Shown: one piece after another, positions 1 to 64,000 of the stretch
How positions within the stretch are numbered: the stretch's first letter is position 1
How the letters are laid out: every line of letters begins with the position of its first letter
Translations under genes and position numbers: made by a program
Origin: Diadema antillarum
Lineage: Eukaryota
Assembly: GCF_040938485.1 (NCBI RefSeq)
Contig: NW_027271384.1
Span: 3,658,001 to 3,722,000, forward strand
Length of the DNA stretch: 64,000 nucleotides
Direction: 5' to 3'
The notes under the pieces: model-generated
Database searches by the model: none
The model's input: only the letters and a program-made list of their open reading frames with translations
Told to the model about the DNA's origin: nothing

Positions 1-297
1 GAAAATCTTACATCTTGGCATCATACCTGCAACAAATTTCACTTGATATTTCATTCTTGTGTCTCCTTCAAATATCTGACAATGAAATTACTTGGACACT
101 AACATAGATGTTAATACTAGTTACTCTTTTTTTTATTGTATAAATACTAGTGTGCACCTAATCGATCCATCCTCGTAACAGGATACACTTCGGACATTTT
201 AAATGCCCATACCTCAAAATCTACACCAATTGATGTGTTGACCCACAATCTGGGAGGCTTTCAAGACTAACGAGTAAAGTAGCTTTCATTCCCTTAC

Positions 298-620
298 CGC
301 GTAAGACTGGTCCGAGCGAATAGTGACGCCGTTGATGAAGCTCAAGGGTGTCGTCCTCCTTGCACCGTTGACTAGAACCACTCTATTCCGCTCGATCGAA
401 TAGCTAGTGCCATTCACCTCCAGTACCACCTTGCGCAGGTACGACACTCGGTCCGATGGGTTGTTCTTGACGTTGTCTCCCCACAAGTGGAAATCCACAA
501 GGTCCGTGCGATCGCTGCACGGCCTCACCAGCGTGTACTCACAGTCGCCCTGGAAGTCATGACGACCACCGTCGAACATAGTGTAGTGCGGATCTCCCCA
601 CACGGTGCAGATTCCAGGCG
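298..620 (-). CDS. Exon A (VWD N-part, GDPH) of the last, partial module
   Basis: Acceptor ttctgaacag|CG CCT GGA; donor TAC GCG|gtaagg; 323 nt. Confidence 0.92.
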
Positions 621-3600
621 CTGTTCAGAAAAGCAGTTGGAAGGTAATTAAAGCACTCTGAATAGTGGCAGCCAGAAGTCCTCACTTCTTCTCGCAACAA
701 AATATACAATTAGCCGCCTACACTACAGATGTATGCCATCTGCCACAAGTAAGCTTAAGGGTTTTTTTCACCTCTCGCATTTATTGCAGACTTCCTTCTA
801 TTTTGGTTTCCTCTTTCAAAACAGTACGGTGTTCATCACATACAAATTAACATGCTCTTTTACCATGCATGACTTGACTGGATCTGTACTCTAACAGCAT
901 AAAAAGAGAACACAAGTACATTTCTACAAAAGAGAGATCACTGGCACTCACAAATGGAGTCCATACACACCTACCAAACACTATCAAAATCTCTTGCAAT
1001 ATTGTGCTTCTTCTAAATATGAGGTACGTTTCCCGTCTACCTTCAGTTTTTCTTCTCGGACAAGATGAGCGGTCGACCAAAGGCTTGAAATACACCGCTC
1101 AGTAAGGCTCATCGCCGCCCCGCGTTCTCTATCTACTACTCAAATGACTTACCTCTGGTGCACTCTCCATTGCTGTAGGTGAAGCCGTCACGACAGTAGC
1201 AGTCTCTCACACCACCCTTGATCCTACACTCCTGGTTCTCCACGCACGCGTATGCCACACATTCCAAAGTGCCTCCAGAACAGCTGCACATCTCGGAGCA
1301 GTCATCGTTCACGTACACATCTCCTGCCTGTTTGTGCCAAAAACCAATCATTTAGATTTGCTTTAGACCATGGTCTTCGTTTCAAGCCATTTGCATCTCC
1401 ATTTGCTTTCAATCCACACGACAATAATCACAGTCTTCAACGTTTTATCAAACTTAAGCTCAAACTTTACCATCAAAGGAGGAAAGCCACACTCACCGAG
1501 ATGTAGCTTCCGTCTGGAAGAGTGCAACCACAATCCTCCGGCTGCACGCATGTTCCACCGTCGTCCAGCAGTCCTTCAGGGCAGCTGCAGATTTCACGGC
1601 AGGGAAGTCCGCAGTTCAGGTCGGCATCTGGATCGGCACAGCTGGGCTGGCAGGCGCTACCGCAAGATTCGTACACTGTTCCAGTCGGACACTCAAACCC
1701 TGAATAAAGACAGTTTTTAGGCAAGGATATACCTTGAACAGCATTTACAACATACAAGAACATACAACAAATGAAATACCCATTCATCACCACGAAAGGT
1801 GTACATTACTTACACCAGATACGATCGGCATCACCCAAAACACAAAGCGCTCACACGAGGCACATCAAGTCAGTACTGTCGTGGACATCCACAGCTGTAC
1901 AGATTTACATTTTTCACACAAAATGCACTACCGTCATTCAGCATCCACACTCTTCTTTCATGACTCCACAATATTTCACTTATTTCTTCCAAACTCACCG
2001 GTCGACTTTCGATGTCTTTCAAAGCCTGCTCACGGCACAGATGGTCATGTCAGACACTCTTGACACGCACTTTGTGATATCTGATCACATGGCTTCATAT
2101 TTTGCACGTCTAGATTCTGATGATCAGCCAAAACAGCTTTCCACTATCCAACAAAAGTGTCATGAAACAAAAATACTTACCGCACTGGAATACAGATGCC
2201 CTCCAGTCCCCAACCAAGATTCCATTTGTTTCTCCTCGACACTTCTGAACGTATTCCTGCAGGGCTCCGCATATGACGTCGTTGTCAGGGTCAGTGAAAC
2301 ACAGGTCGAAGACGCAGGCATCATAGTAATCACTCACGTCCACAAAGTCTGCGCAGCCTCCAAGGGGACCTGAAAGCAAGAAACAGCTGCAAATATAAGC
2401 TCTTGGATACTACACAAACAACAAACAAAGATAAACACACACAAAAAAGAAAACAGACTGAGAAATCCCACTGGACTTTTCTGATCGAGGCGATCAGAAA
2501 TCATCAGACAAATCCTCAGATAGGATGTCCCATACTCTAGATGCTTACCACGCTCATTTTCTAACTTGTACTCTTTCAACGCTTCAATAGATTGCTTTAA
2601 CTTTTTATATATCATATCGACTCCTTAACTCCCACACTATACGAGTACTGTACTGCGCCGCAGTAAAATTCAATCATCTCCATCTGCTCACCGTCTGGAT
2701 TGATGAAGATGTAGCAGATGTCCTCCACTCGTTGCCGCACGTCGGGGTCATCACAGCCATCAACCGGCGGGAGAACAGTGGTATCGCACTCCTCTTCATT
2801 CAGAACCCAGTCATTACCAAAGACATTCTGGAACCGTGTCTGCAAACAGAACCACATTCGTTAACACAATAAATGTAGTCCCTTTTCATCATTTTCTTGG
2901 TACTAAGTTTTGGGTACGGATGGACGATCAGGTCACTGATACATCCATAACACTGATTACGTCAAAGTCCAGTCACATGCGGAACATGTCTCTTTCCTAC
3001 AATCGGATACCCTGATAGACAGGGTATTGAGAAAGGGAGTAAAAAGAGAGCAGAGTTCTACTTACGACACTTCCATCCTGGAGGCGGAAATCGTTGGATC
3101 TGTCGTCATCGAAGGTTCCGCACAGACCACAAGTAGCATTCCAGTACTGGTATGGCACCTCTATGGTTGCAGTGTTGGCTCCGTCGAAACGTACAGACAG
3201 ACCAAAGGATGTTTGGATGGTCTGTAATAACGATCAGATATCAGGTCCTCTTTACCCTTCCCTTCATATCATGCCTCTATGCTCAATTCTAAAACAATTA
3301 CGTATCAAGCGAAAATCTTACATCTTGGCATCATACCTGCAACAAATTTCACTTGATATTTCATTCTTGTGTCTCCTTCAAATATCTGACAATGAAATTA
3401 CTTGGACACTAACATAGATGTTAATACTAGTTACTCTTTTTTTTATTGTATAAATACTAGTGTGCACCTAATCGATCCATTCTCGTAACAGGATACACTT
3501 CGGACATTTTAAATGCCCATACCTCAAAATCTACACCAATTGATGTGTTGACCCACAATCTGGGAGGCTTTCAAGACTAACGAGTAAAGTAGCTTTCATT

Positions 3601-6600
3601 CCCTTACCGCGTAAGACTGGTCCGAGCGAATAGTGACGCCGTTGATGAAGCTCAAGGGTGTCGTCCTCCTTGCACCGTTGACTAGAACCACTCTATTCCG
3701 CTCGATCGAATAGCTAGTGCCATTCACCTCCAGTACCACCTTGCGCAGGTACGACACTCGGTCCGATGGGTTGTTCTTGACGTTGTCTCCCCACAAGTGG
3801 AAATCCACAAGGTCCGTGCGATCGCTGCACGGCCTCACCAGCGTGTACTCACAGTCGCCCTGGAAATCATGACGACCACCGTCGAACATAGTGTAGTGCG
3901 GATCTCCCCACACGGTGCAGATTCCAGGCGCTGTTCAGAAAAGCAGTTGGAAGGTAATTAAAGCACTCTGAATAGTGGCAGCCAGAAGTCCTCACTTCTT
4001 CTCGCAACAAAATATACAGTTAGCCGCCTACACTACAGATGTATGCCATCTGCCACAAGTAAGCTTAAGGGTTTTTTTCACCTCTCGCATTTATTGCAGA
4101 CTTCCTTCTATTTTGGTTTCCTCTTTCAAAACAGTACGGTGTTCATCACATACAAATTAACATGCTCTTTTACCATGCATGACTTGACTGGATCTGTACT
4201 CTAACAGCATAAAAAGAGAACACAAGTACATTTCTACAAAAGAGAGATCACTGGCACTCACAAATGGAGTCCATACACACCTACCAAACACTATCAAAAT
4301 CTCTTGCAATATTGTGCTTCTTCTAAATATGAGGTACGTTTCCCGTCTACCTTCAGTTTTTCTTCTCGGACAAGATGAGCGGTCGACCAAAGGCTTGAAA
4401 TACACCGCTCAGTAAGGCTCATCGCCGCCCCGCGTTCTCTATCTACTACTCAAATGACTTACCTCTGGTGCACTCTCCATTGCTGTAGGTGAAGCCGTCA
4501 CGACAGTAGCAGTCTCTCACACCACCCTTGATCCTACACTCCTGGTTCTCTACGCACGCGTATGCCACACATTCCAAAGTGCCTCCAGAACAGCTGCACA
4601 TTTCGGAGCAGTCATCGTTCACGTACACATCTCCTGCCTGTTTGTGCCAAAAACCAATCATTTAGATTTGCTTCAGACCATGGTCTTCGTTTCAAGCCAT
4701 TTGCATCTCCATTTGCTTTCAATCCACACGACAATAATCACAGTCTTCAACGTTTTATCAAACTTAAGCTCAAACTTTACCATCAAAGGAGGAAAGCCAC
4801 ACTCACCGAGATGTAGCTTCCGTCTGGAAGAGTGCAACCACAATCCTCCGGCTGCACGCATGTTCCACCGTCGTCCAGCAGTCCTTCAGGGCAGCTGCAG
4901 ATTTCACGGCAGGGAAGTCCGCAGTTCAGGTCGGCATCTGGATCGGCACAGCTGGGCTGGCAGGCGCTACCGCAAGATTCGTACACTGTTCCAGTCGGAC
5001 ACTCAAACCCTGAATAAAGACAGTTTTTAGGCAAGGATATACCTTGAACAGCATTTACAACATACAAGAACATACAACAAATGAAATACCCATTCATCAC
5101 CACGAAAGCTGTACATTACTTACACCGGATACGATCGGCATCACCCAAAACACAAAGCGCTCACACGAGGCACATCAAGTCAGTACTGTCGTGGACATCC
5201 ACAGCTGTACAGATTTACATTTTTCACACAAAATGCACTACCGTCATTCAGCATCCGCACTCTTCTTTCATGACTCCACAATATTTCACTTATTTCTTCC
5301 AAACTCACCGGTCGACTTTCGATGTCTTTCAAAGCCTGCTCACGGCACAGATGGTCATGTCAGACACTCTTGACACGCACTTTGTGATATCTGATCACAT
5401 GGCTTCATATTTTGCACGTCTAGATTCTGATGATCAGCCAAAACAGCTTTCCACTATAGAAAAAAAGTGTCATGACACAAAAATACTTACCGCACTGGAA
5501 TACAGATGCCCTCCAGTCCCCAACCAAGATTCCATTTGTTTCTCCTCGACACTTCTGAACGTATTCCTGCAGGGCTCCGCATATGACGTCGTTGTCAGGG
5601 TCAGTGAAACACAGGTCGAAGACGCAGGCATCATAGTAATCACTCACGTCCACAAAGTCTGCGCAGCCTCCAAGGGGACCTGAAAGCAAGAAACAGCTGC
5701 AAATATAAGCTCTTGGATACTACACAAACAACAAACAAAGATAAACACACACAAAAAAGAAAACAGACTGAGAAATCCCACTGGACTTTTCTGATCGAGG
5801 CGATCAGAAATCATCAGACAAATCCTCAGATAGGATGTCCCATACTCTAGATGCTTACCACGCTCATTTTCTAACTTGTACTCTTTCAACGCTTCAATAG
5901 ATTGCTTTAACTTTTTATATATCATATCGACTCCTTAACTCCCACACTATACGAGTACTGTACTGCGCCGCAGTAAAATTCAATCATCTCCATCTGCTCA
6001 CCGTCTGGATTGATGAAGATGTAGCAGATGTCCTCCACTCGTTGCCGCACGTCGGGGTCATCACAGCCATCAACCGGCGGGAGAACAGTGGTATCGCACT
6101 CCTCTTCATTCAGAACCCAGTCATTACCAAAGACATTCTGGAACCGTGTCTGCAAACAGAACCACATTCGTTAACACAATAAATGTAGTCCCTTTTCATC
6201 ATTTTCTTGGTACTAAGTTTTGGGTACGGATGGACGATCAGGTCACTGATACATCCATAACACTGATTACGTCAAAGTCCAGTCACATGCGGAACATGTC
6301 TCTTTCCTACAATCGGATACCCTGATAGACAGGGTATTGAGAAAGGGAGTAAAAAGAGAGCAGAGTTCTACTTACGACACTTCCATCCTGGAGGCGGAAA
6401 TCGTTGGATCTGTCGTCATCGAAGGTTCCGCACAGACCACAAGTAGCATTCCAGTACTGGTATGGCACCTCTATGGTTGCAGTGTTGGCTCCGTCGAAAC
6501 GTACAGACAGACCAAAGGATGTTTGGATGGTCTGTAATAACGATCAGATATCAGGTCCTCTTTACCCTTCCCTTCATATCATGCCTCTATGCTCAATTCT

Positions 6601-9600
6601 AAAACAATTACGTATCAAGCGAAAATCTTACATCTTGGCATCATACCTGCAACAAATTTCACTTGATATTTCATTCTTGTGTCTCCTTCAAATATCTGAC
6701 AATGAAATTACTTGGACACTAACATAGATGTTAATACTAGTTACTCTTTTTTTTATTGTATAAATACTAGTGTGCACCTAATCGATCCATCCTCGTAACA
6801 GGATACACTTCGGACATTTTAAATGCCCATACCTCAAAATCTACACCAATTGATGTGTTGACCCACAATCTGGGAGGCTTTCAAGACTAACGAGTAAAGT
6901 AGCTTTCATTCCCTTACCGCGTAAGACTGGTCCGAGCGAATAGTGACGCCGTTGATGAAGCTCAAGGGTGTCGTCCTCCTTGCACCGTTGACTAGAACCA
7001 CTCTATTCCGCTCGATCGAATAGCTAGTGCCATTCACCTCCAGTACCACCTTGCGCAGGTACGACACTCGGTCCGATGGGTTGTTCTTGACGTTGTCTCC
7101 CCACAAGTGGAAATCCACAAGGTCCGTGCGATCGCTGCACGGCCTCACCAGCGTGTACTCACAGTCGCCCTGGAAGTCATGACGACCACCGTCGAACATA
7201 GTGTAGTGCGGATCTCCCCACACGGTGCAGATTCCAGGCGCTGTTCAGAAAAGCAGTTGGAAGGTAATTAAAGCACTCTGAATAGTGGCAGCCAGAAGTC
7301 CTCACTTCTTCTCGCAACAAAATATACAATTAGCCGCCTACACTACAGATGTATGCCATCTGCCACAAGTAAGCTTAAGGGTTTTTTTCACCTCTCGCAT
7401 TTATTGCAGACTTCCTTCTATTTTGGTTTCCTCTTTCAAAACAGTACGGTGTTCATCACATACAAATTAACATGCTCTTTTACCATGCATGACTTGACTG
7501 GATCTGTACTCTAACAGCATAAAAAGAGAACACAAGTACATTTCTACAAAAGAGAGATCACTGGCACTCACAAATGGAGTCCATACACACCTACCAAACA
7601 CTATCAAAATCTCTTGCAATATTGTGCTTCTTCTAAATATGAGGTACGTTTCCCGTCTACCTTCAGTTTTTCTTCTCGGACAAGATGAGCGGTCGACCAA
7701 AGGCTTGAAATACACCGCTCAGTAAGGCTCATCGCCGCCCCGCGTTCTCTATCTACTACTCAAATGACTTACCTCTGGTGCACTCTCCATTGCTGTAGGT
7801 GAAGCCGTCACGACAGTAGCAGTCTCTCACACCACCCTTGATCCTACACTCCTGGTTCTCCACGCACGCGTATGCCACACATTCCAAAGTGCCTCCAGAA
7901 CAGCTGCACATCTCGGAGCAGTCATCGTTCACGTACACATCTCCTGCCTGTTTGTGCCAAAAACCAATCATTTAGATTTGCTTTAGACCATGGTCTTCGT
8001 TTCAAGCCATTTGCATCTCCATTTGCTTTCAATCCACACGACAATAATCACAGTCTTCAACGTTTTATCAAACTTAAGCTCAAACTTTACCATCAAAGGA
8101 GGAAAGCCACACTCACCGAGATGTAGCTTCCGTCTGGAAGAGTGCAACCACAATCCTCCGGCTGCACGCATGTTCCACCGTCGTCCAGCAGTCCTTCAGG
8201 GCAGCTGCAGATTTCACGGCAGGGAAGTCCGCAGTTCAGGTCGGCATCTGGATCGGCACAGCTGGGCTGGCAGGCGCTACCGCAAGATTCGTACACTGTT
8301 CCAGTCGGACACTCAAACCCTGAATAAAGACAGTTTTTAGGCAAGGATATACCTTGAACAGCATTTACAACATACAAGAACATACAACAAATGAAATACC
8401 CATTCATCACCACGAAAGGTGTACATTACTTACACCAGATACGATCGGCATCACCCAAAACACAAAGCGCTCACACGAGGCACATCAAGTCAGTACTGTC
8501 GTGGACATCCACAGCTGTACAGATTTACATTTTTCACACAAAATGCACTACCGTCATTCAGCATCCGCACTCTTCTTTCATGACTCCACAATATTTCACT
8601 TATTTCTTCCAAACTCACCGGTCGACTTTCGATGTCTTTCAAAGCCTGCTCACGGCACAGATGGTCATGTCAGACACTCTTGACACGCACTTTGTGATAT
8701 CTGATCACATGGCCTCATATTTTGCACGTCTAGATTCTGATGATCAGCCAAAACAGCTTTCCACTATACAACAAAAGTGTCATGACACAAAAATACTTAC
8801 CGCACTGGAATACAGATGCCCTCCAGTCCCCAACCAAGATTCCATTTGTTTCTCCTCGACACTTCTGAACGTATTCCTGCAGGGCTCCGCATATGACGTC
8901 GTTGTCAGGGTCAGTGAAACACAGGTCGAAGACGCAGGCATCATAGTAATCACTCACGTCCACAAAGTCTGCGCAGCCTCCAAGGGGACCTGAAAGCAAG
9001 AAACAGCTGCAAATATAAGCTCTTGGATACTACACAAACAACAAACAAAGATAAACACACACAAAAAAGAAAACAGACTGAGAAATCCCACTGGACTTTT
9101 CTGATCGAGGCGATCAGAAATCATCAGACAAATCCTCAGATAGGATGTCCCATACTCTAGATGCTTACCACGCTCATTTTCTAACTTGTACTCTTTCAAC
9201 GCTTCAATAGATTGCTTTAACTTTTTATATATCATATCGACTCCTTAACTCCCACACTATACGAGTACTGTACTGCGCCGCAGTAAAATTCAATCATCTC
9301 CATCTGCTCACCGTCTGGATTGATGAAGATGTAGCAGATGTCCTCCACTCGTTGCCGCACGTCGGGGTCATCACAGCCATCAACCGGCGGGAGAACAGTG
9401 GTATCGCACTCCTCTTCATTCAGAACCCAGTCATTACCAAAGACATTCTGGAACCGTGTCTGCAAACAGAACCACATTCGTTAACACAATAAATGTAGTC
9501 CCTTTTCATCATTTTCTTGGTACTAAGTTTTGGGTACGGATGGACGATCAGGTCACTGATACATCCATAACACTGATTACGTCAAAGTCCAGTCACATGC

Positions 9601-51600: not shown

Positions 51601-54600
51601 AATTACGTATCAAGCGAAAATCTTACATCTTGGCATCATACCTGCAACAAATTTCACTTGATATTTCATTCTTGTGTCTCCTTCAAATATCTGACAATGA
51701 AATTACTTGGACACTAACATAGATGTTAATACTAGTTACTCTTTTTTTTATTGTATAAATACTAGTGTGCACCTAATCGATCCATCCTCGTAACAAGATA
51801 CACTTTGCACATATTAAATGCCCCTACATCAAAATCAATATCAATTGATGTGCTGACCCACAATTTGGGAGGCTTTCAAGACTAACGAGTAAACCAGCCA
51901 TCATTCCCTTACCGCGTAAGACCGGTCCGAGCGAATAGTGATGCCGTTGATGAAGCTCAAGGGTGTCGTCCGCCTTGCACCGTTGACTAGAACCACTCTA
52001 TTCCGCTCGATCGAATAGCTAGTGCCATTCACCTCCAGTACCACCTTGCGCAGGTACGACACTCGGTCCGATGGGTTGTTCTTGACGTTGTCTCCCCACA
52101 AGTGGAAATCCACAAGGTCCGTGCGGTCGCTGCACGGCCTCACCAGCGTGTACTCACAGTCGCCCTGGAAGTCATGACGACCACCGTCGAACATAGTGTA
52201 GTGCGGATCTCCCCACACGGTGCAGATTCCAGGCGCTGTTCAGAGAAGCAGTCGGAAGGTAATTAAAGCACTCTGAATAGTGGCAGCCAGAAGCCCTCAC
52301 TTCTTCTCCCAACAAAATATACAATTGGCCGCCTACACTACAGATGTCTGCCATCTGCCACAAGTAAGCTTAACGGTTTTTTTCACCTCTCGCATTTCTT
52401 GCAGACTTCCTTCTATTTTAATTGGTTTCCTCTTTCAAAACAGTACGGTGTTCATCACATACAAAAGTACATGCTCTTTTACCATGCATGACCTGACTGG
52501 ATCTTGTACTCTAACAGCATAAAAAGAGAACACATGCAAGTACATTTCCACAAAAGAGAGATCACTGGCACTCACAAATGGAGTCCATACACACCTACCA
52601 AACACTATCAAAATCTCTTGCAATATTGTGCTTCTTCAAAATATGAGGTTTCCCGTCTACCTTCAGTTTTTCTTCTCAGACAAGATGAGCAGTCGACCAA
52701 AGGCTTGAAATACACAGCTCAGTAAGGCTCATCGCCGCCCCGCGTTCTCTATCTATTACTCAAATGACTTACCTCTGGTGCATTCTCCATTGCTGTAGGT
52801 GAAGCCGTCCCGACAGTAGCAGTCTCTCACACCACCCTTGATCCTACACTCCTGGTTCTCCACGCACGCGTATGCCACACATTCCAAAGTGCCTCCAGAA
52901 CAGCTGCACATCTCGGAGCAGTCATCGTTCACGTACACATCCCCTGCCTGTTTGTGCCAATACCAATCATTTAGATTTGCTTTAGACCATGGTCTTCTTT
53001 TCAAGCCATTTGCATCTCCATTTGCTTTCAATCCACACGACAATAATCACAGTGTTCAACGATTTATTAAACTTAAGCTCAAATATTACCATCAAAGGAG
53101 GAAAGCCACACTCACCGAGATGTAGCTTCCGTCTGGAAGAGTGCAACCACAATCCTCTGGCTGCACGCATGTTCCGCCGTCGTCCAGCAGTCCTTCGGGG
53201 CAGCTGCAGATTTCACGGCAGGGAAGTCCGCAGTTCAGGTCGGAATCTGGATCGGCACAGCTGGGCTGGCAGGCGCTACCGCAAGATTCGTACACTGTTC
53301 CACTCGGACACTCAAACCCTGAATAAAGACAATTTTTAGGCAAGGATATACCTTGAACGTCATTTACAACGTACAAGAACATACAACAAGTGAAATACCC
53401 ATTCATCACCACGAAAGCTGTACATTACTTACACCGGATACGATCGGCATCACCAAGAACACAAAGTGCTCACACGAGTCATATAAAGTCAGTACTGTCG
53501 GGGACATTCACAACTGTACAGATTTACAGTTTTCACGCAAAATGCACTACCGTCATTCAGCATCTGCACTCTTCTTTCATGACTCCACAATATTTCACTT
53601 ATTTCTTCCAAACCCACCGAAAGACTTTCGACGTCTTTCAAAAGCTGCATCTCATCCTCACGGCACAGAGGGTCATGTCAGAGACTCTTGACACGCACTT
53701 CATGATATCTGATCACATGGCTTTATTTTTTGCACCTCTAGATTCTGATGATCAGCCAAAACAGCTTTCCACTATACAACATAAGTGTCATGACACAAAA
53801 ATACTTACCGCACTGGATTACAGACGCCCTCCAGTCCCCAGCCAAGATGCCATTTGTTTCTCCTCGACACTTCTGAACGTATTCCTGCAGGGCTCCGCAT
53901 ATGATGTCGTTGTCAGGGTCAGTGAAACACAGGTCGAAGACGCAGGCATCATAGTAATCACTCACGTCCACAAAGTCGGAGCAGCCTCCCAGGGGACCTG
54001 AAAGCAAGAAACAGCTGCAAATATAAGCTCTTGGATACTACACAAACAACAAACAAAAATACACACACAGAAAAAAGAAAAGAGACTGAGAAATTCCACT
54101 GCACTTTTCTATTCGAGGTGATTAGAAATCATCAGACAAATAGTCAGATAGGATGTACCATACTCCAGCTGCTTACCACGCTCATTTTCAAATTTGCCCT
54201 CTTTTAATGCTTCAATAGATTGCTTTAACTTTTTGCATATCATATCGACTCATCTACTCATAGAATACACGAGTACTGTAGTGTGCCTCAGTGAAATTCA
54301 ATCATCTCCATCTTCTCACCGTCAGGATTGATGAAGATGTAGCAGATGTCCTCCACACGTTGCTGCACGTCGGGGTCATCACAGCCATCAGGGGGCGGGA
54401 GAATTGTGGTATCGCACTCCTCTTCATTCAGAACCCAGTCATTACCAAAGACATTCTGGTACGGTGTCTGCAAACAGGACCACATTCGTCAACACAATAA
54501 TTGGTACTTTTGGGTACAGCTGCACGATCAGGTCACTGTTACATCCACAACACTGATTACATCAAAGTCCAGTCACATGCGGAACATGTCTCTTTCCTAC

Positions 54601-57600
54601 AATCAAATACCCTGATAGACAGGGTATTGAGAAAGAAGGTAATAAGAGAGCAGAGTTCTACTTACGACACTTCCATCCTGGAGGCGGAAATCGTTGGATC
54701 TGTCGTCATCGAAGGTTCCGCACAGACCACAAGTAGCATTCCAGTACTGGTATGGCACCTCTATGGTTGCAGTGTTGGCTCCGTCGAAACGTACAGATAG
54801 ACCAAAGGATGTTTGGATAGTCTGTAATAACGATCAGATATCAGGTCCTGTTTACCCTTCCCCTCATATCGTGCCTTTATACTCAATTCTAAAACAATTA
54901 CGTGTCAAACAAAAATCTTACATCTTGGCATCACGGCTGCAACAAATTTCACTGATATTTCATTTTTGTGTCTCCTTCAAATAATTGACAATGAAATTGC
55001 TTTGACACTAACATAGATGTTAATGCTAGTTTCTCTTTCATTTAATTGTATAAATACTAGTGTGCACCTAATCGATCCATCCTTGTAACAAGACACACTT
55101 TGGACATTTTAAATGCCCCTACATCAAAATCAATATCAATTGATGTGCTGACCCACAATTGAGTAAACCAGCCATCATTCCCTTACCGCGTAAGACCGGT
55201 CCGAGCGAATAGTGATGCCGTTGATGAAGCTCAAGGGTGTCGTCCGCCTTGCACCGTTGACTAGAACCACTCTATTCCGCTCGATCGAATAGCTAGTGCC
55301 ATTCACCTCTAGTACCACCTTGCGCAGGTACGACACTCGGTCCGATGGGTTGTTCTTGACGTTGTCTCCCCACAAGTGGAAATCCACAAGGTCCGTGCGG
55401 TCGCTGCACGGCCTCACCAGCGTGTACTCACAGTCGCCCTGGAAGTCATGACGACCACCGTCGAACATAGTGTAGTGCGGATCTCCCCACACGGTGCAGA
55501 TTCCAGGCGCTGTTCAGAGAAGCAGTCGGAAGGTAATTAAAGCACTCTGAATAGTGGCAGCCAGAAGCCCTCACTTCTTCTCCCAACAAAATATACAATT
55601 GGCCGCCTACACTACAGATGTCTGCCATCTGCCACAAGTAAGCTTAACGGTTTTTTTCACCTCTCGCATTTCTTGCAGACTTCCTTCTATTTTAATTGGT
55701 TTCCTCTTTCAAAACAGTACGGTGTTCATCACATACAAAAGTACATGCTCTTTTACCATGCATGACCTGACTGGATCTTGTACTCTAACAGCATAAAAAG
55801 AGAACACATGCAAGTACATTTCCACAAAAGAGAGATCACTGGCACTCACAAATGGAGTCCATACACACCTACCAAACACTATCAAAATCTCTTGCAATAT
55901 TGTGCTTCTTCAAAATATGAGGTTTCCCGTCTACCTTCAGTTTTTCTTCTCAGACAAGATGAGCAGTCGACCAAAGGCTTGAAATACACAGCTCAGTAAG
56001 GCTCATCGCCGCCCCGCGTTCTCTACAGTGTATCTATTACTCAAATGACTTACCTCTGGTGCATTCTCCATTGCTGTAGGTGAAGCCGTCCCGACAGTAG
56101 CAGTCTCTCACACCACCCTTGATCCTACACTCCTGGTTCTCCACGCACGCGTATGCCACACATTCCGAAGTGCCTCCAGAACAGCTGCACATCTCGGAGC
56201 AGTCATCGTTCACGTACACATCCCCTGCCTGTTTGTGCCAATACCAATCATTTAGATTTGCTTTAGACCATGGTCTTCTTTTCAAGCCATTTGCATCTCC
56301 ATTTGCTTTCAATCCACACGACAATAATCACAGTGTTCAACGATTTATTAAACTTAAGCTCAAATATTACCATCAAAGGAGGAAAGCCACACTCACCGAG
56401 ATGTAGCTTCCGTCTGGAAGAGTGCAACCACAATCCTCTGGCTGCACGCATGTTCCGCCGTCGTCCAGCAGTCCTTCGGGGCAGCTGCAGATTTCACGGC
56501 AGGGAAGTCCGCAGTTCAGGTCGGCATCTGGATCGGCACAGCTGGGCTGGCAGGCGCTACCGCAAGATTCGTACACTGTTCCACTCGGACACTCAAACCC
56601 TGAATAAAGACAGTTTTTAGGCAAGGATATACCTTGAACGTCATTTACAACGTACAAGAACATACAACAAGTGAAATACCCATTCATCACCACGAAAGCT
56701 GTACATTACTTACACCGGATACGATCGGCATCACCAAAAACACAAAGTGCTCACACAAGTCATATAAAGTCAGTACTGTCGGGGACATTCACAACTGTAC
56801 AGATTTACAGTTTTCACGCAAAATGCACTACCGTCATTCAGCATCTGCACTCTTCTTTCATGACTCCACAATATTTCACTTATTTCTTCCAAACCCACCG
56901 AAAGACTTTCGACGTCTTTCAAAAGCTGCATCTCATCCTCACGGCACAGAGGGTCATGTCAGAGACTCTTGACACGCACTTCATGATATCTGATCACATG
57001 GCTTTATTTTTTGCACCTCTAGATTCTGATGATCAGCCAAAACAGCTTTCCACTATACAACATAAGTGTCATGACACAAAAATACTTACCGCACTGGATT
57101 ACAGACGCCCTCCAGTCCCCAGCCAAGATGCCATTTGTTTCTCCTCGACACTTCTGAACGTATTCCTGCAGGGCTCCGCATATGATGTCGTTGTCAGGGT
57201 CAGTGAAACACAGGTCGAAGACGCAGGCATCATAGTAATCACTCACGTCCACAAAGTCGGAGCAGCCTCCCAGGGGACCTGAAAGCAAGAAACAGCTGCA
57301 AATATAAGCTCTTGGATACTACACAAACAACAAACAAAAATACACACACAGAAAAAAGAAAAGAGACTGAGAAATTCCACTGCACTTTTCTATTCGAGGT
57401 GATTAGAAATCATCAGACAAATAGTCAGATAGGATGTACCATACTCTAGCTGCTTACCACGCTCATTTTCTAATTTGCCCTCTTTTAATGCTTCAATAGA
57501 TTGCTTTAACTTTTTGCATATCATATCGACTCATCTACTCATAGAATACACGAGTACTGTAGTGTGCCTCAGTGAAATTCAATCATCTCCATCTTCTCAC

Positions 57601-60600
57601 CGTCAGGATTGATGAAGATGTAGCAGATGTCCTCCACACGTTGCTGCACGTCGGGGTCATCACAGCCATCAGGGGGCGGGAGAATTGTGGTATCGCACTC
57701 CTCTTCATTCAGAACCCAGTCATTACCAAAGACATTCTGGTACGGTGTCTGCAAACAGGACCACATTCGTCAACACAATTATTGGTACTTTTGGGTACAG
57801 CTGCACGATCAGGTCACTGTTACATCCACAACACTGATTACATCAAAGTCCAGTCACATGCGGAACATGTCTCTTTCCTACAATCAAATACCCTGATAGA
57901 CAGGGTATTGAGAAAGAAGGTAATAAGAGAGCAGAGTTCTACTTACGACACTTCCATCCTGGAGGCGGAAATCGTTGGATCTGTCGTCATCGAAGGTTCC
58001 GCACAGACCACAAGTAGCATTCCAGTACTGGTATGGCACCTCTATGGTTGCAGTGTTGGCTCCGTCGAAACGTACAGATAGACCAAAGGATGTTTGGATA
58101 GTCTGTAATAACGATCAGATATCAGGTCCTGTTTACCCTTCCCTTCATATCGTGCCTTTATGCTCAATTCTAAAACAATTACGTGTCAAACAAAAATCTT
58201 ACATCTTGGCATCACGGCTGCAACAAATTTCACTGATATTTCATTTTCGTGTCTCCTTCAAATATCTGACAATGAAATTGCTTTGACACTAACATAGATG
58301 TTAATACTAGTTTCTCTTTCATTTAATTGTATAAATACTAGTGTGCACCACATCCTTGTAACAAGACACACTTTGGACATTTTAAATGCCCCTACATCAA
58401 AATCAATATCAATTGATGTGCTGACCCACAATTGAGTAAACCAGCCATCATTCCCTTACCGCGTAAAACCGGTCCGAGCGAATAGTGATGCCGTTGATGA
58501 AGCTCAAGGGTGTCGTCCGCCTTGCACCGTTGACTAGAACCACTCTATTCCGCTCGATCGAATAGCTAGTGCCATTCACCTCTAGTACCACCTTGCGCAG
58601 GTACGACACTCGGTCCGATGGGTTGTTCTTGACGTTGTCTCCCCACAAGTGGAAATCCACAAGGTCCGTGCGATCGCTGCACGGCCTCACCAGCGTGTAC
58701 TCACAGTCGCCCTGGAAGTCATGACGACCACCGTCGAACATAGTGTAGTGCGGATCTCCCCACACGGTGCAGATTCCAGGCGCTGTTCAGAGAAGCAGTC
58801 GGAAGGTAATTAAAGCACTCTGAATAGTGGCAGCCAGAAGCCCTCACTTCTTCTCCCAACAAAATATACAATTGGCCGCCTACACTACAGATGTCTGCCA
58901 TCTGCCACAAGTAAGCTTAACGTTTCTTTTCACCTCTCGCATTTCTTGCAGACTTCCTTCTATTTTAATTGGTTTCCTCTTTCAAAACAGTACGGTGTTC
59001 ATCACATACAAAACTACATGCTCTTTTACCATGCATGACCTGACTGGATCTTGTACTCTAACAGCATAAAAAGAGAACACATGCAAGTACATTTCCACAA
59101 AAGAGAGATCACTGGCACTCACAAATGGAGTCCATACACACCTACCAAACACTATCAAAATCTCTTGCAATATTGTGCTTCTTCAAAATATGAGGTTTCC
59201 CGTCTACCTTCAGTTTTTCTTCTCAGACAAGATGAGCAGTCGACCAAAGGCTTGAAATACACAGCTCAGTAAGGCTCATCGCCGCCCCGCGTTCTCTATC
59301 TATTACTCAAATGACTTACCTCTGGTGCATTCTCCATTGCTGTAGGTGAAGCCGTCCCGACAGTAGCAGTCTCTCACACCACCCTTGATCCTACACTCCT
59401 GGTTCTCCACGCACGCGTATGCCACACATTCCAAAGTGCCTCCAGAACAGCTGCACATCTCGGAGCAGTCATCGTTCACGTACACATCCCCTGCCTGTTT
59501 GTGCCAATACCAATCATTTAGATTTGCTTTAGACCATGGTCTTCTTTTCAAGCCATTTGCATCTCCATTTGCTTTCAATCCACACGACAATAATCACAGT
59601 GTTCAACGATTTATTAAACTTAAGCTCAAATATTACCATCAAAGGAGGAAAGCCACACTCACCGAGATGTAGCTTCCGTCTGGAAGAGTGCAACCACAAT
59701 CCTCTGGCTGCACGCATGTTCCGCCGTCGTCCAGCAGTCCTTCGGGGCAGCTGCAGATTTCACGGCAGGGAAGTCCGCAGTTCAGGTCGGCATCTGGATC
59801 GGCACAGCTGGGCTGGCAGGCGCTACCGCAAGATTCGTACACTGTTCCACTCGGACACTCAAACCCTGAATAAAGACAATTTTTAGGCAAGGATATACCT
59901 TGAACGTCATTTACAACGTACAAGAACATACAACAAGTGAAATACCCATTCATCACCACGAAAGCTGTACATTACTTACACCGGATACGATCGGCATCAC
60001 CAAAAACACAAAGTGCTCACACAAGTCATATAAAGTCAGTACCGTCGGGGACATTCACAACTGTACAGATTTACAGTTTTCACGCAAAATGCACTACCGT
60101 CATTCAGCATCTGCACTCTTCTTTCATGACTCCACAATATTTCACTTATTTCTTCCAAACCCACCGAAAGACTTTCGACGTCTTTCAAAAGCTGCATCTC
60201 ATCCTCACGGCACAGAGGGTCATGTCAGAGACTCTTGACACGCACTTCATGATATCTGATCACATGGCTTTATTTTTTGCACCTCTAGATTCTGATGATC
60301 AGCCAAAACAGCTTTCCACTATACAACATAAGTGTCATGACACAAAAATACTTACCGCACTGGATTACAGACGCCCTCCAGTCCCCAGCCAAGATGCCAT
60401 TTGTTTCTCCTCGACACTTCTGAACGTATTCCTGCAGGGCTCCGCATATGATGTCGTTGTCAGGGTCAGTGAAACACAGGTCGAAGACGCAGGCATCATA
60501 GTAATCACTCACGTCCACAAAGTCGGAGCAGCCTCCCAGGGGACCTGAAAGCAAGAAACAGCTGCAAATATAAGCTCTTGGATACTACACAAACAACAAA

Positions 60601-63600
60601 CAAAAATACACACACAGAAAAAAGAAAAGAGACTGAGAAATTCCACTGCACTTTTCTATTCGAGGTGATTAGAAATCATCAGACAAATAGTCAGATAGGA
60701 TGTACCATACTCTAGCTGCTTACCACGCTCATTTTCTAATTTGCCCTCTTTTAATGCTTCAATAGATTGCTTTAACTTTTTGCATATCATATCGACTCAT
60801 CTACTCATAGAATACACGAGTACTGTAGTGTGCCTCAGTGAAATTCAATCATCTCCATCTTCTCACCGTCAGGATTGATGAAGATGTAGCAGATGTCCTC
60901 CACACGTTGCTGCACGTCGGGGTCATCACAGCCATCAGGGGGCGGGAGAATTGTGGTATCGCACTCCTCTTCATTCAGAACCCAGTCATTACCAAAGACA
61001 TTCTGGTACGGTGTCTGCAAACAGGACCACATTCGTCAACACAATAATTGGTACTTTTGGGTACAGCTGCACGATCAGGTCACTGTTACATCCACAACAC
61101 TGATTACATCAAAGTCCAGTCACATGCGGAACATGTCTCTTTCCTACAATCAAATACCCTGATAGACAGGGTATTGAGAAAGAAGGTAATAAGAGAGCAG
61201 AGTTCTACTTACGACACTTCCATCCTGGAGGCGGAAATCGTTGGATCTGTCGTCATCGAAGGTTCCGCACAGACCACAAGTAGCATTCCAGTACTGGTAT
61301 GGCACCTCTATGGTTGCAGTGTTGGCTCCGTCGAAACGTACAGATAGACCAAAGGATGTTTGGATAGTCTGTAATAACGATCAGATATCAGGTCCTGTTT
61401 ACCCTTCCCTTCATATCGTGCCTTTATGCTCAATTCTAAAACAATTACGTGTCAAACAAAAATCTTACATCTTGGCATCACGGCTGCAACAAATTTCACT
61501 GATATTTCATTTTCGTGTCTCCTTCAAATATCTGACAATGAAATTGCTTTGACACTAACATAGATGTTAATACTAGTTTCTCTTTCATTTAATTGTATAA
61601 ATACTAGTGTGCACCTAATCGATCCATCCTTGTAACAAGACACACTTTGGACATTTTAAATGCCCCTACATCAAAATCAATATCAATTGATGTGCTGACC
61701 CACAATTGAGTAAACCAGCCATCATTCCCTTACCGCGTAAGACCGGTCCGAGCGAATAGTGATGCCGTTGATGAAGCTCAAGGGTGTCGTCCGCCTTGCA
61801 CCGTTGACTAGAACCACTCTATTCCGCTCGATCGAATAGCTAGTGCCATTCACCTCCAGTACCACCTTGCGCAGGTACGACACTCGGTCCGATGGGTTGT
61901 TCTTGACGTTGTCTCCCCACAAGTGGAAATCCACAAGGTCCATGCGGTCGCTGCACGGCCTCACCAGCGTGTACTCACAGTCGCCCTGGAAGTCATGACG
62001 ACCACCGTCGAACATAGTGTAGTGCGGATCTCCCCACACGGTGCAGATTCCAGGCGCTGTTCAGAGAAGCAGTCGGAAGGTAATTAAAGCACTCTGAATA
62101 GTGGCAGCCAGAAGCCCTCACTTCTTCTCCCAACAAAATATACAATTGGCCGCCTACACTACAGATGTCTGCCATCTGCCACAAGTAAGCTTAACGTTTC
62201 TTTTCACCTCTCGCATTTCTTGCAGACTTCCTTCTATTTTAATTGGTTTCCTCTTTCAAAACAGTACGGTGTTCATCACATACAAAAGTACATGCTCTTT
62301 TACCATGCATGACCTGACTGGATCTTGTACTCTAACAGCATAAAAAGAGAACACATGCAAGTACATTTCCACAAAAGAGAGATCACTGGCACTCACAAAT
62401 GGAGTCCATACACACCTACCAAACACTATCAAAATCTCTTGCAATATTGTGCTTCTTCAAAATATGAGGTTTCCCGTCTACCTTCAGTTTTTCTTCTCAG
62501 ACAAGATGAGCAGTCGACCAAAGGCTTGAAATACACAGCTCAGTAAGGCTCATCGCCGCCCCGCGTTCTCTATCTATTACTCAAATGACTTACCTCTGGT
62601 GCATTCTCCATTGCTGTAGGTGAAGCCGTCCCGACAGTAGCAGTCTCTCACACCACCCTTGATCCTACACTCCTGGTTCTCCACGCACGCGTATGCCACA
62701 CATTCCAAAGTGCCTCCAGAACAGCTGCACATCTCGGAGCAGTCATCGTTCACGTACACATCCCCTGCCTGTTTGTGCCAATACCAATCATTTAGATTTG
62801 CTTTAGACCATGGTCTTCTTTTCAAGCCATTTGCATCTCCATTTGCTTTCAATCCACACGACAATAATCACAGTGTTCAACGATTTATTAAACTTAAGCT
62901 CAAATATTACCATCAAAGGAGGAAAGCCACACTCACCGAGATGTAGCTTCCGTCTGGAAGAGTGCAACCACAATCCTCTGGCTGCATGCATGTTCCGCCG
63001 TCGTCCAGCAGTCCTTCGGGGCAGCTGCAGATTTCACGGCAGGGAAGTCCGCAGTTCAGGTCGGCATCTGGATCGGCACAGCTGGGCTGGCAGGCGCTAC
63101 CGCAAGATTCGTACACTGTTCCACTCGGACACTCAAACCCTGAATAAAGACATTTTTTAGGCAAGGATATACCTTGAACGTCATTTACAACGTACAAGAA
63201 CATACAACAAGTGAAATACCCATTCATCACCACGAAAGCTGTACATTACTTACACCGGATACGATCGGCATCACCAAAAACACAAAGTGCTCACACAAGT
63301 CATATAAAGTCAGTACTGTCGTGGACATTCACAACTGTACAGATTTACAGTTTTCACGCAAAATGCACTACCGTCATTCAGCATCTGCACTCTTCTTTCA
63401 TGACTCCACAATATTTCACTTATTTCTTCCAAACCCACCGAAAGACTTTCGACGTCTTTCAAAAGCTGCATCTCATCCTCACGGCACAGAGGGTCATGTC
63501 AGAGACTCTTGACACGCACTTCATGATATCTGATCACATGGCTTTATTTTTTGCACCTCTAGATTCTGATGATCAGCCAAAACAGCTTTCCACTATACAA

Positions 63601-63818
63601 CATAAGTGTCATGACACAAAAATACTTACCGCACTGGATTACAGACGCCCTCCAGTCCCCAGCCAAGATGCCATTTGTTTCTCCTCGACACTTCTGAACG
63701 TATTCCTGCAGGGCTCCGCATATGATGTCGTTGTCAGGGTCAGTGAAACACAGGTCGAAGACGCAGGCATCATAGTAATCACTCACGTCCACAAAGTCGG
63801 AGCAGCCTCCCAGGGGAC
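298..63818 (-). CDS. Interior of a giant multi-exon VWD-C8-TIL-TILa/EGF repeat protein gene (FCGBP/zonadhesin/tectorin-like); partial at both ends
   Basis: 100 exons with canonical GT-AG ends splice in frame throughout (boundary phases 1-0-0-1-1-0-1). The module reads [18 protein letters not shown]...SYA|TIQTSFG...[16 protein letters not shown]...|[11 protein letters not shown]...|PLGGC...C8...|FECPTG...TIL...|AGDVY...ECTR. About 19,990 coding nt; no Met start or stop in the window. Confidence 0.93.
1153..3930 (-). CDS. Complete 398-aa module (L type)
   Basis: Exons A 3608-3930, B 3066-3221, D 2692-2839, E 2181-2369, F 1497-1699, G 1153-1327. Introns 386, 226, 322, 481, 169 and 532 nt; exons plus introns sum to 3310. 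Confidence 0.92.
4463..7240 (-). CDS. Complete 398-aa module (L type)
   Basis: A 6918-7240, B 6376-6531, D 6002-6149, E 5491-5679, F 4807-5009, G 4463-4637. Confidence 0.92.
7773..10550 (-). CDS. Complete 398-aa module (L type)
   Basis: A 10228-10550, B 9686-9841, D 9312-9459, E 8801-8989, F 8117-8319, G 7773-7947. Confidence 0.92.
11083..13860 (-). CDS. Complete 398-aa module (L type)
   Basis: A 13538-13860, B 12996-13151, D 12622-12769, E 12111-12299, F 11427-11629, G 11083-11257. Confidence 0.92.
14393..17170 (-). CDS. Complete 398-aa module (L type)
   Basis: A 16848-17170, B 16306-16461, D 15932-16079, E 15421-15609, F 14737-14939, G 14393-14567. Confidence 0.92.
17703..20480 (-). CDS. 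Complete 398-aa module (L type)
   Basis: A 20158-20480, B 19616-19771, D 19242-19389, E 18731-18919, F 18047-18249, G 17703-17877. Confidence 0.92.
21013..23790 (-). CDS. Complete 398-aa module (L type)
   Basis: A 23468-23790, B 22926-23081, D 22552-22699, E 22041-22229, F 21357-21559, G 21013-21187. Confidence 0.92.
24323..27100 (-). CDS. Complete 398-aa module (L type, GCSDF variant)
   Basis: A 26778-27100, B 26236-26391, D 25862-26009, E 25351-25539, F 24667-24869, G 24323-24497. Confidence 0.92.
27633..30410 (-). CDS. Complete 398-aa module (L type, GCSDF variant)
   Basis: A 30088-30410, B 29546-29701, D 29172-29319, E 28661-28849, F 27977-28179, G 27633-27807. Confidence 0.92.
30943..33720 (-). 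CDS. Complete 398-aa module (L type, GCSDF variant and private V>A in exon D)
   Basis: A 33398-33720, B 32856-33011, D 32482-32629 (TTALPP, a>g at 32565), E 31971-32159, F 31287-31489, G 30943-31117. Confidence 0.92.
34253..37030 (-). CDS. Complete 398-aa module (L type)
   Basis: A 36708-37030, B 36166-36321, D 35792-35939, E 35281-35469, F 34597-34799, G 34253-34427. Confidence 0.92.
37563..40340 (-). CDS. Complete 398-aa module (L type)
   Basis: A 40018-40340, B 39476-39631, D 39102-39249, E 38591-38779, F 37907-38109, G 37563-37737. Confidence 0.92.
40873..52235 (-). CDS. Complete 398-aa module whose D-E intron carries the 8.6-kb insertion
   Basis: A 51913-52235 (R type), B 51371-51526, D 50997-51144, E 41901-42089, F 41217-41419, G 40873-41047. 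The D-E intron (42090-50996) is 8907 nt instead of 322; both splice sites are intact. Confidence 0.88.
42387..42424 (+). repeat. Left terminal inverted repeat
   Basis: GGCGTGACAGATTTAATATAGCGAGCGTTCGGCCGCGT. Confidence 0.92.
43055..43710. repeat. 71-bp degenerate minisatellite, ~9 copies
   Basis: Anchor (aat)GTCrGAT at 43061, 43132, 43203, 43274, 43345, 43416, 43487, 43558, 43628, 43699. Confidence 0.9.
44740..44920. repeat. Simple repeats: (AAAAC)n and (TG)n
   Basis: aaataaaacaaaacaaaacaaaac at ~44747-44770; tgtgtgtgtgtatgtgtgtg at ~44898-44918. Confidence 0.8.
45038..45564. mobile_element. Possible nested ~527-bp Harbinger-like MITE
   Basis: Ends AGCTACGTTTACACCATGTTCCCGGC and GCCGTGAACATGTGTAAACGCGGCT form an imperfect inverted repeat. 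Left flank is TAA but right flank is TTT, so the TSD is not clean. Confidence 0.5.
46481..46670. mobile_element. ~190-bp foldback/MITE with ~55-bp inverted arms bounded by G16 and C15 runs
   Basis: Left arm gcgtttaataaatctgtttgtacagttacgaacaacttacgagcgactggtga pairs with right arm tcatcagtcactcgtaagtcgttcgtatctttacgaacagctttatgac. Confidence 0.78.
48477..49445. repeat. ~320-335-bp degenerate tandem repeat, 3 copies
   Basis: Anchor CAAGTCTTTTCAACAATAAC-like at 48477, 48796, 49130; internal sub-repeat GCGTTGC..GTGATTTGATGGACTTGCATTTGA twice per copy. Confidence 0.85.
49850..50033. mobile_element. Right-end remnant of a Tc1/pogo-like TIR element
   Basis: Ends ...GTCGACTTAAGCAATGTCGAGGTTTACTG|TA (reverse complement TA|CAGTAAACCTCGAC), with GTCGACT(T/A)A repeated 4 times subterminally; no matching left end found. 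Confidence 0.45.
50931..50968 (-). repeat. Right terminal inverted repeat
   Basis: Reverse complement GGCGTGACAGATTTTATCTCACGAGCGTTCGCCCGCGT; 5 mismatches to the left TIR. Confidence 0.92.
50972..51790. repeat. L-type continuation of the interrupted unit (exons D and B plus introns)
   Basis: Resumes exactly at taa|aattcaatcatctcc and matches the L consensus (offset 48305) up to ~51790. Confidence 0.93.
52773..55509 (-). CDS. Complete 398-aa module (R type)
   Basis: A 55187-55509, B 54666-54821, D 54320-54467, E 53809-53997, F 53116-53318, G 52773-52947. Confidence 0.92.
56054..58782 (-). CDS. Complete 398-aa module (R type)
   Basis: A 58460-58782, B 57947-58102, D 57601-57748, E 57090-57278, F 56397-56599, G 56054-56228. 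Confidence 0.92.
59320..62056 (-). CDS. Complete 398-aa module (R type)
   Basis: A 61734-62056, B 61213-61368, D 60867-61014, E 60356-60544, F 59663-59865, G 59320-59494. Confidence 0.92.
62594..63818 (-). CDS. Partial module (exons E, F, G; R type) at the window edge
   Basis: E 63630-63818, F 62937-63139, G 62594-62768. Confidence 0.9.
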
Positions 63819-64000
63819 CTGAAAGCAAGAAACAGCTGCAAATATAAGCTCTTGGATACTACACAAACAACAAACAAAAATACACACACAGAAAAAAGAA
63901 AAGAGACTGAGAAATTCCACTGCACTTTTCTATTCGAGGTGATTAGAAATCATCAGACAAATAGTCAGATAGGATGTACCATACTCCAGCTGCTTACCAC

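Follow-up and report, generated by a model that had tools for sequence, protein, structure and literature searches.

A 64,000-nucleotide stretch of the Diadema antillarum genome (RefSeq assembly GCF_040938485.1, contig NW_027271384.1, positions 3,658,001 to 3,722,000 of the forward strand), called the window below, is probably an inner stretch of one very large gene for an extracellular, mucin-like protein, which lies on the minus strand of its contig, C496, and is built up from amplified frame-neutral cassettes for D assemblies. Proteins rich in D assemblies, such as mucins, FCGBP and VWF, build mucus and adhesive gels, and the gene described here is an extreme, new variant within the known D-assembly proteins. 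Coordinates are counted from window position 1 and run on past both window edges.

The repeat unit came out of a BLAST search of the window with its own first 3,310 bases; Tandem Repeats Finder, with a longest period of 500, missed the 3.3-kb period. With unit 1 as the query, starts of what we call type I units recur every 3,310 bp from 1 to 39721, giving 13 units, 12 of them full and the thirteenth split by an insert. BLAST aligns them at 99.6-100% identity with 0 indels over 43 kb. The 12 full units differ at 26 variable sites, 6 of which are in exons, and the variants occur in mosaic patterns common to several units, as expected from unequal exchange or conversion. From 51616, the window has type II units of about 3,270 bp, 3 complete and most of a fourth, which are 99-100% identical among themselves and 92-93.5% identical to type I.

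Each unit contains six exons, A to F, that add up to 1,194 nt or 398 codons, with phases that are compatible throughout, the step from F to the next A included. Exon F ends, and the A after it starts, in phase 1, which carries the frame from one unit to the next. Joined by a script from 63818 down to 298, the complete exon copies number 100, all of them intact with AG/GT sites; they are ordered DEF(ABCDEF)x16 A and amount to 19,994 nt or 6,664 codons with no stop, carrying 17 GDPH and 16 CGLCG motifs, with 34 Cys per 398-residue module. This joined, spliced model was used in scripts only (for stops and substitutions), and searches were made with single exons or parts of stored RefSeq proteins. 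The first-pass annotation of the window had claimed at least 16 complete 398-residue modules from six in-frame exons, about 6,660 residues in all, with 17 VWD starts, 34 Cys per module and no stop, and all of this is borne out, as is its proposal of intragenic tandem amplification, the thing repeated being an in-frame six-exon cassette.

Exon by exon, Pfam matches VWD over A and B, C8 in D, TIL in E and TILa in F, and a whole module taken from a RefSeq protein gives the four in that order, all above the Pfam cut-offs (TILa at E = 5e-11). The best solved-structure match of the whole module is FCGBP (8rde, 8r0t) over residues 5-384, with further matches to MUC5AC, MUC5B, MUC2 and VWF, and the alignments span residues 2-387 in all. 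As judged by these matches, the module is one complete D assembly (VWD-C8-TIL-TILa/E). The EGF-like module end that the first reading had seen is rejected: the tail of exon F is the ordinary TILa/E of a D assembly, and EGF_3 reaches only E = 0.03, below the cut-off.

GDPH, a Cys 5 residues before its Asp, a Gln 14 after the Asp, and CGLCG are kept in 47 of the 47 modules of the locus, and CGLCG is found in 49/49 exon-B copies of the region. The GDPH motif, the upstream Cys and the Gln at +14 are residues of proven importance in FCGBP, where they serve self-cleavage at Asp-Pro and the disulfide by which the fragments stay linked (PMC10880436, PMC8267560). The spacings read from the Diadema sequences, C-x4-D and D-x13-Q, are those that the autocleavage motif requires, and by analogy cleavage at GD/PH may occur here too. 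Between types I and II, exons diverge by 2.6% and introns by 6.7%, with dS 0.071, dN 0.014 and dN/dS 0.20. The module exons are under purifying selection, and the array is real coding sequence, more than chance would provide.

The locus was mapped on fetched flanks by tblastn with the six exon peptides. It holds 47 VWD starts on one strand of C496, from 155568 to -58016, the modules covering about 218 kb, with about one third of them in the window; the array had been said to run past the window edges, and it does, on both sides. From 5' to 3' the order is 5 diverged modules, then the arrays of type II (16 units), type I (13) and type III (11), then 2 more diverged modules. Type III units are about 3,300 bp, and their protein is 47% identical to that of type I. 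EGF exons and two FN3-like exons lie upstream of the arrays and between the first modules, and C496 ends at 175312. Compared with the pattern in the sea star Patiria, the Diadema locus is missing only about 35-40 N-terminal residues, at the contig end. The flanks, which the first-pass annotation had proposed to annotate for the signal peptide and stop, yield an EGF/FN3 head and a mucin exon, and no convincing signal-peptide exon in the last 3.1 kb before the contig ends.

On the 3' side, a phase-1 donor-like site is retained at the last exon F, whose end is at -62910, and 2 kb after the last module a Thr/Ser-rich exon of about 3,950 codons (open frame 3,965) is found on the minus strand from -64923 to -76765. 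It is open in 1 of 6 frames, its composition is T 31%, S 11%, D 10% and P 3%, and it contains TTDF-type repeats, a 35-aa repeat in 10 copies and a 101-aa repeat in 2. Its consensus phase-1 acceptor matches the phase-1 donor of the last exon F. By composition and phase this is a mucin-type domain following the last D assembly, and a putative part of the same polypeptide. A mucus-type extracellular protein with an in-phase Thr/Ser-rich exon agrees with the secreted polymer or matrix protein that had been proposed, but the sea-star orthologue has a transmembrane segment at its end, and "secreted polymer" may therefore be inaccurate in detail. The FN3 and transmembrane part at the C terminus of the Patiria protein has no match downstream in the searched C496 flank. 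A second Thr/Ser-rich open reading frame lies at -77972 to -78520. Further VWD-C8-TIL-TILa modules are found on the minus strand at -101443 to -119516, 38 kb past the mucin exon, one of them with GGPH instead of GDPH; in order they line up with the D assembly found after the mucin region in a Holothuria model, and they may belong to the same gene or to the next.

RefSeq divides the locus among at least 7 models on C496, small ones of 389-548 aa, one of 2,918 aa and one of 4,904 aa, with the fragment names IgGFc-binding protein-like, zonadhesin-like and alpha-tectorin-like, so the locus is not unannotated. Read at face value, these models describe a tandem cluster of many separate small genes, each for a one- or two-module protein. 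But the small models take as their start either an intronic Met (MWFCLQ...) upstream of exon C or a Met inside exon A, they lack a signal peptide, and their ends are made by read-through of a donor into the intron. No module has a start codon plus signal peptide; the units are identical in their introns, so that none has its own promoter or first exon; all junctions keep the frame; and the Patiria orthologue is one model with the same order. With that evidence we consider a cluster of separate genes very unlikely. The longer models bridge parts of the locus: P0170 (2,918 aa, "partial") starts in the EGF head, takes in five modules, enters the type II array and stops at an indel-rich unit, and P0151 (4,904 aa) crosses the gap between arrays I and III, linking the final type I exon F with the initial type III exon A. 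That gap is 7.9 kb on C496 versus about 2.2 kb on C616, the contig of the second haplotype (about 5.7 kb longer on C496). The bridging RefSeq models, the Patiria orthologue, the phase match and the shorter C616 gap together favour one gene that annotation failed to hold together, which would then be expressed as a single transcript.

Several observations pull the other way from one continuous gene, beginning with the RefSeq splitting itself. No convincing signal-peptide exon is found in the last 3.1 kb of C496 on the 5' side. The RNA evidence comes from one run search, on Logan contigs only. Run X5, whose kind is unrecorded, has contigs with the predicted B to C and D to E splice joints, and also has an unspliced F-intron-A form; no read or contig crosses an F to A junction in the run data searched; and the RNA-labelled runs X19 and X20 cover introns as well as exons, with no splice joints. 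Just outside the window, at 65305-71526 and 98861-100674, 1-2-nt indels break type II exons A, C, D and E, and on C616 one type I exon A is truncated (1730957-1731115). The quality of the assembly bears on the copy number in the same direction, as described below.

A decaying or silent repeat array, no longer expressed, would account for the frameshifts outside the window and for the fact that no run recorded as RNA holds the stretch. Such decay is hardly compatible with the intact state of every exon copy in the window, the dN/dS value, the spliced joints in X5 and the functional motifs kept in all 47 modules, and the frameshifts cluster in the manner of sequencing error; we regard it as extremely improbable. 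It is also conceivable that there is one gene whose cassettes are used variably. Since the units are frame-neutral, whole units could be skipped, and mature mRNAs and proteins would then have far fewer than 47 modules, damaged units, if real, being among those skipped. The length of the unit (a multiple of three, with phase 1 at both ends) would permit this, and broken exons do occur at the two places outside the window and on C616, but every window exon keeps consensus splice sites and is under purifying selection; variable use seems unlikely to us.

The assembly (GCA_040938485.1), which keeps both haplotypes, is built on HiFi reads (mean 6.8 kb, about 11x per haplotype), with Nanopore reads of two other animals used to patch gaps and with Illumina polishing (PMC13511894). 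With HiFi reads so short and at such low depth, and with cross-animal Nanopore patches, the copy numbers are unverified. On C616 the locus occupies 1664326-1785314 (coordinates only), between flanks that match C496 at 96% and 88-90% identity. By an exon-A protein search, C496 has type II 16, type I 13 and type III 11, and C616 has type II 7, type I 10 (counting the truncated one) and type III 14. The unit counts as assembled in this one assembly differ between the haplotypes, in agreement with the first-pass idea that the length of the protein is set by copy number. Between anchors, C616 is 49.4 kb shorter than C496, which is close to the size of 12 type I/II units plus the transposon of unit 13 (about 48 kb); the 3 additional type III units and the shorter I-III gap offset each other only partly. 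Genome-wide, family hits also pair with equal scores on different contigs, e.g. IgGFc_binding on C168/C1461, C557/C998 and C15/C1679, which is the signature of a retained second haplotype.

The arrays may be real and their assembled unit numbers (13 and 16) nevertheless inflated, deflated or chimeric, so that the haplotype difference would in part be an artefact. Near-identical 3.3-kb repeats had to be assembled from 6.8-kb reads and from Nanopore patches of other animals (PMC13511894), and the type II array contains two clusters of homopolymer-type indels. At 65305-71526, 15 of 17 indel events are of 1-2 nt, mostly in homopolymers, and one type II exon A in these patches carries seven such indels; the patches are probably unpolished long-read sequence and not real mutations, and possibly cross-individual patches. 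Type II units 5 and 10 are 100.0% alike, as part of the 5-unit shift described next, and the run data consist of contigs only, so there is no depth readout. Against such an error, no two type I units share an exact match longer than 3,727 bp, which is less than the mean read length; the type I array is without any indel over its whole length; long arrays of all three types are present on each haplotype contig independently; and the difference between anchors is close to its expected value. On balance we think that an error in the unit numbers is rather unlikely, while keeping it in mind. As to the type II array from 54912 to 94124, units 3, 4 and 5 match units 8, 9 and 10 at 99.9-100%, a shift of 5 units (16.3 kb), and unit lengths cycle through 3,266, 3,274 and 3,281 bp; the shift could be a segmental duplication inside the array or an assembly duplication.

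In the explanation that we propose for this one large gene, each 3.3-kb unit is a frame-neutral six-exon cassette encoding one complete D assembly of 398 aa, and unequal recombination has amplified the cassette and goes on homogenising it, introns included. The outcome is arrays of type II x16, type I x13 and type III x11 set between older, diverged modules. The order of the gene would be signal peptide (not found), EGFx6, D, EGFx4, D, EGFx7, FN3x2, 3 D, the three arrays, 2 D and the mucin exon, with possibly more beyond. By the FCGBP analogy, every VWD would cut itself at GD/PH in the endoplasmic reticulum, and the cut pieces would stay joined by one disulfide each, making a long chain of beads that could be opened by reduction. 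The number of modules, and hence the length of the protein, would differ between haplotypes. A role in mucus, a coat or an adhesive may be expected. The strongest form of the proposal is that one polypeptide of about 24,000 residues comprises the EGF/FN3 head, every one of the 47 D assemblies and the product of the mucin exon, and cuts itself at 47 GD/PH sites, that its length is a common polymorphism through unequal recombination, and that the haplotypes of one animal are about 9 modules apart net; this we put forward only tentatively, as a possibility that may well not hold in full.

To ask where the gene belongs, we compare it with its relatives. Among 150 matches listed from 1.84 billion representative proteins, the highest number of matched VWD stretches, 15, belongs to an FCGBP-like protein (6,378 aa) of a caecilian, so the locus has three times the D assemblies of any match listed (47 vs 15); the module number was correctly placed above the 13 of FCGBP. 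Among those matches, the closest annotated urchin relatives (Lytechinus) are 49-57% identical over 2-4 matched VWD stretches, and 12 modules are counted in the sea-star orthologue, which agrees with the lineage-specific expansion that had been suspected, here specific to Diadema. The Patiria miniata orthologue (P0164) is one 6,632-aa model that begins with a signal peptide and runs EGF-D-EGF-D-EGF-FN3-D..., with 12 GDPH modules, a PTS region, FN3 repeats and a transmembrane segment; as judged by the order of the domains, the Diadema locus is colinear with it. At about residues 2845-4826 it has five or six nearly identical consecutive D assemblies, and the presence of near-identical inner modules in Patiria too suggests that homogenisation is recurrent in this echinoderm gene and arose there apart from the Diadema arrays.

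The gene thus appears to belong with the uncharacterised echinoderm "IgGFc-binding protein-like" genes. Models of that name in Patiria and in Holothuria leucospilota (6,755 aa) share with Diadema a colinear N-terminal order, 44-45% identity per module, near-identical inner modules, and a PTS region after the D assemblies. They differ in having 12 (Patiria) and 10 (Holothuria) GDPH modules vs 47, and Diadema alone of these has three separate homogenised arrays, while the C-terminal FN3 and transmembrane part of Patiria is not found in it. A limited literature search turned up no paper describing this gene family.

Vertebrate FCGBP itself resembles the Diadema locus in its tandem VWD-C8-TIL-E assemblies with no mucin sequence between them, in GDPH in nearly every VWD with a Cys 5 upstream, and in nearly identical inner modules; it has 13 assemblies against 47, and Diadema adds the EGF-repeat N terminus and the following mucin PTS exon. 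The locus has the many consecutive VWD-C8-TIL units typical of the FCGBP family in the sense of Lang et al. 2016, but that family is defined by its N-terminal domain FCGBP_N (PMC4948705), and of 55 genome matches to FCGBP_N / IgGFc_binding (PF17517), with all 55 candidates scored, 0 are on C496 or C616. PF17517 is absent from the Pfam list of the colinear Patiria protein as well. An FCGBP orthologue is therefore rejected, EGF repeats standing in the place of that domain. Identity with alpha-tectorin, the name of one RefSeq fragment, is rejected too: zona pellucida domains have 60 genome matches, and among the 150 of 165 candidates scored, 0 are on C496 or C616. MAM domains, which would point to zonadhesin, are absent from both contigs among the 150 of 1,397 candidates scored; very large MAM exon arrays are present on C100, C129 and C687. 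By its domain content, then, the gene would work like FCGBP and mucins and seems not to be an orthologue of FCGBP, of alpha-tectorin or, within that MAM scan of 150/1,397 candidates, of zonadhesin.

Gel-forming mucins (MUC2, MUC5AC, MUC5B) and VWF share with Diadema D assemblies with CGLCG, and the putative mucin exon of Diadema would correspond to their central Thr/Ser-rich domain in one giant exon. In mucins, 3 D assemblies are N-terminal and 1 is C-terminal, and length varies in the PTS repeats, whereas in Diadema the D assemblies themselves are the repeat. A parallel for the arrangement is the kringle IV-2 array of LPA, an in-frame multi-exon cassette in tandem, with introns as alike as exons, whose haplotype copy number sets protein size. 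The LPA unit has two exons in 5.5 kb and encodes a different domain, whereas that of Diadema has six exons in 3.3 kb and makes three arrays in one gene. The trait of such exon-cassette variable number tandem repeats, in-frame tandem cassettes with introns as alike as exons, is found in the Diadema arrays. Large Cys-rich proteins with VWD, C8, TIL and EGF domains are also known among adhesives, namely the sea-star footprint protein Sfp1 and the "alpha-tectorin-like" adhesive candidates of urchin tube feet. Sfp1 cuts itself autocatalytically into subunits (PMC7037938); with 3,853 aa, it differs from the Diadema gene in also carrying discoidin and lectin domains.

What appears to vary in copy number at this locus is a whole folded and, by analogy, self-cleaving domain assembly instead of a simple peptide repeat, and so it offers a natural experiment on chain length against the properties of a gel or coat. 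We know of no established function for FCGBP-type chains. If the tentative figure of about 24,000 residues is right, the polypeptide would be among the longest animal proteins. The locus also illustrates clearly how multi-exon cassettes evolve in concert, and shows how automated annotation and assembly fail on such genes, with RefSeq giving at least seven fragments. Diadema antillarum has suffered mass die-offs from a surface-invading ciliate, which makes its surface mucus genes of practical interest.

Table 1. Arrays, exons and insert in the window, with positions counted from its first base
Feature	Position	Strand	Basis or remark
Type I array: units 1-12 and first 2,666 bp of unit 13	1..42386	-	exact period, identity, no indels
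Exon A, unit 1: N-terminal two thirds of VWD; acceptor phase 1, donor phase 0	298..620	-	splice sites; VWD E = 6e-18, profile 1-92
GDPH codons GGA GAT CCG CAC, Asp-Pro autocleavage motif, unit 1 exon A	586..597	-	read from sequence
Exon F, unit 1: TILa / E module; phase-1 donor joins exon A of next unit	1153..1327	-	TILa E = 7.5e-9
Exon E, unit 1: TIL domain	1497..1699	-	TIL E = 3e-13
Exon D, unit 1: C8 domain	2181..2369	-	C8 E = 2e-14
Exon C, unit 1: linker from VWD to C8	2692..2839	-	inside span aligned to FCGBP (module residues 5-384)
Exon B, unit 1: C-terminal third of VWD	3066..3221	-	VWD E = 1e-13, profile 108-156
CGLCG codons, unit 1 exon B	3117..3131	-	read from sequence
Transposon, 8,582 bp, in intron between C and D of type I unit 13	42387..50968		splits unit 13
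Remainder of type I unit 13, exons C and B	50969..51615	-	100% identical to unit positions 2664-3310
Type II array in window	51616..64000	-	continues 37 kb past window
First complete exon in window, a type II exon D	63630..63818	-	exon-joining script

The insert in unit 13 has a 14-bp terminal inverted repeat, GGCGTGACAGATTT, and a target duplication TAA, and at least 40 copies at 96-99% identity are found elsewhere in the genome. It contains no open reading frame over 126 aa, and its internal tandem repeats are at 43057-43705 (71 bp x 9) and 48466-49322 (320 bp x 2.6). It fits PIF/Harbinger as a candidate assignment. The exon spacing of the C616 arrays has no 8.6-kb gap, so the insertion is specific to one haplotype and therefore recent. 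In the gap between arrays I and III, a very high-copy repeat at -3410 to -2446 has a summed contig depth of about 10^5 in the best DNA run, versus a few hundred on the array.

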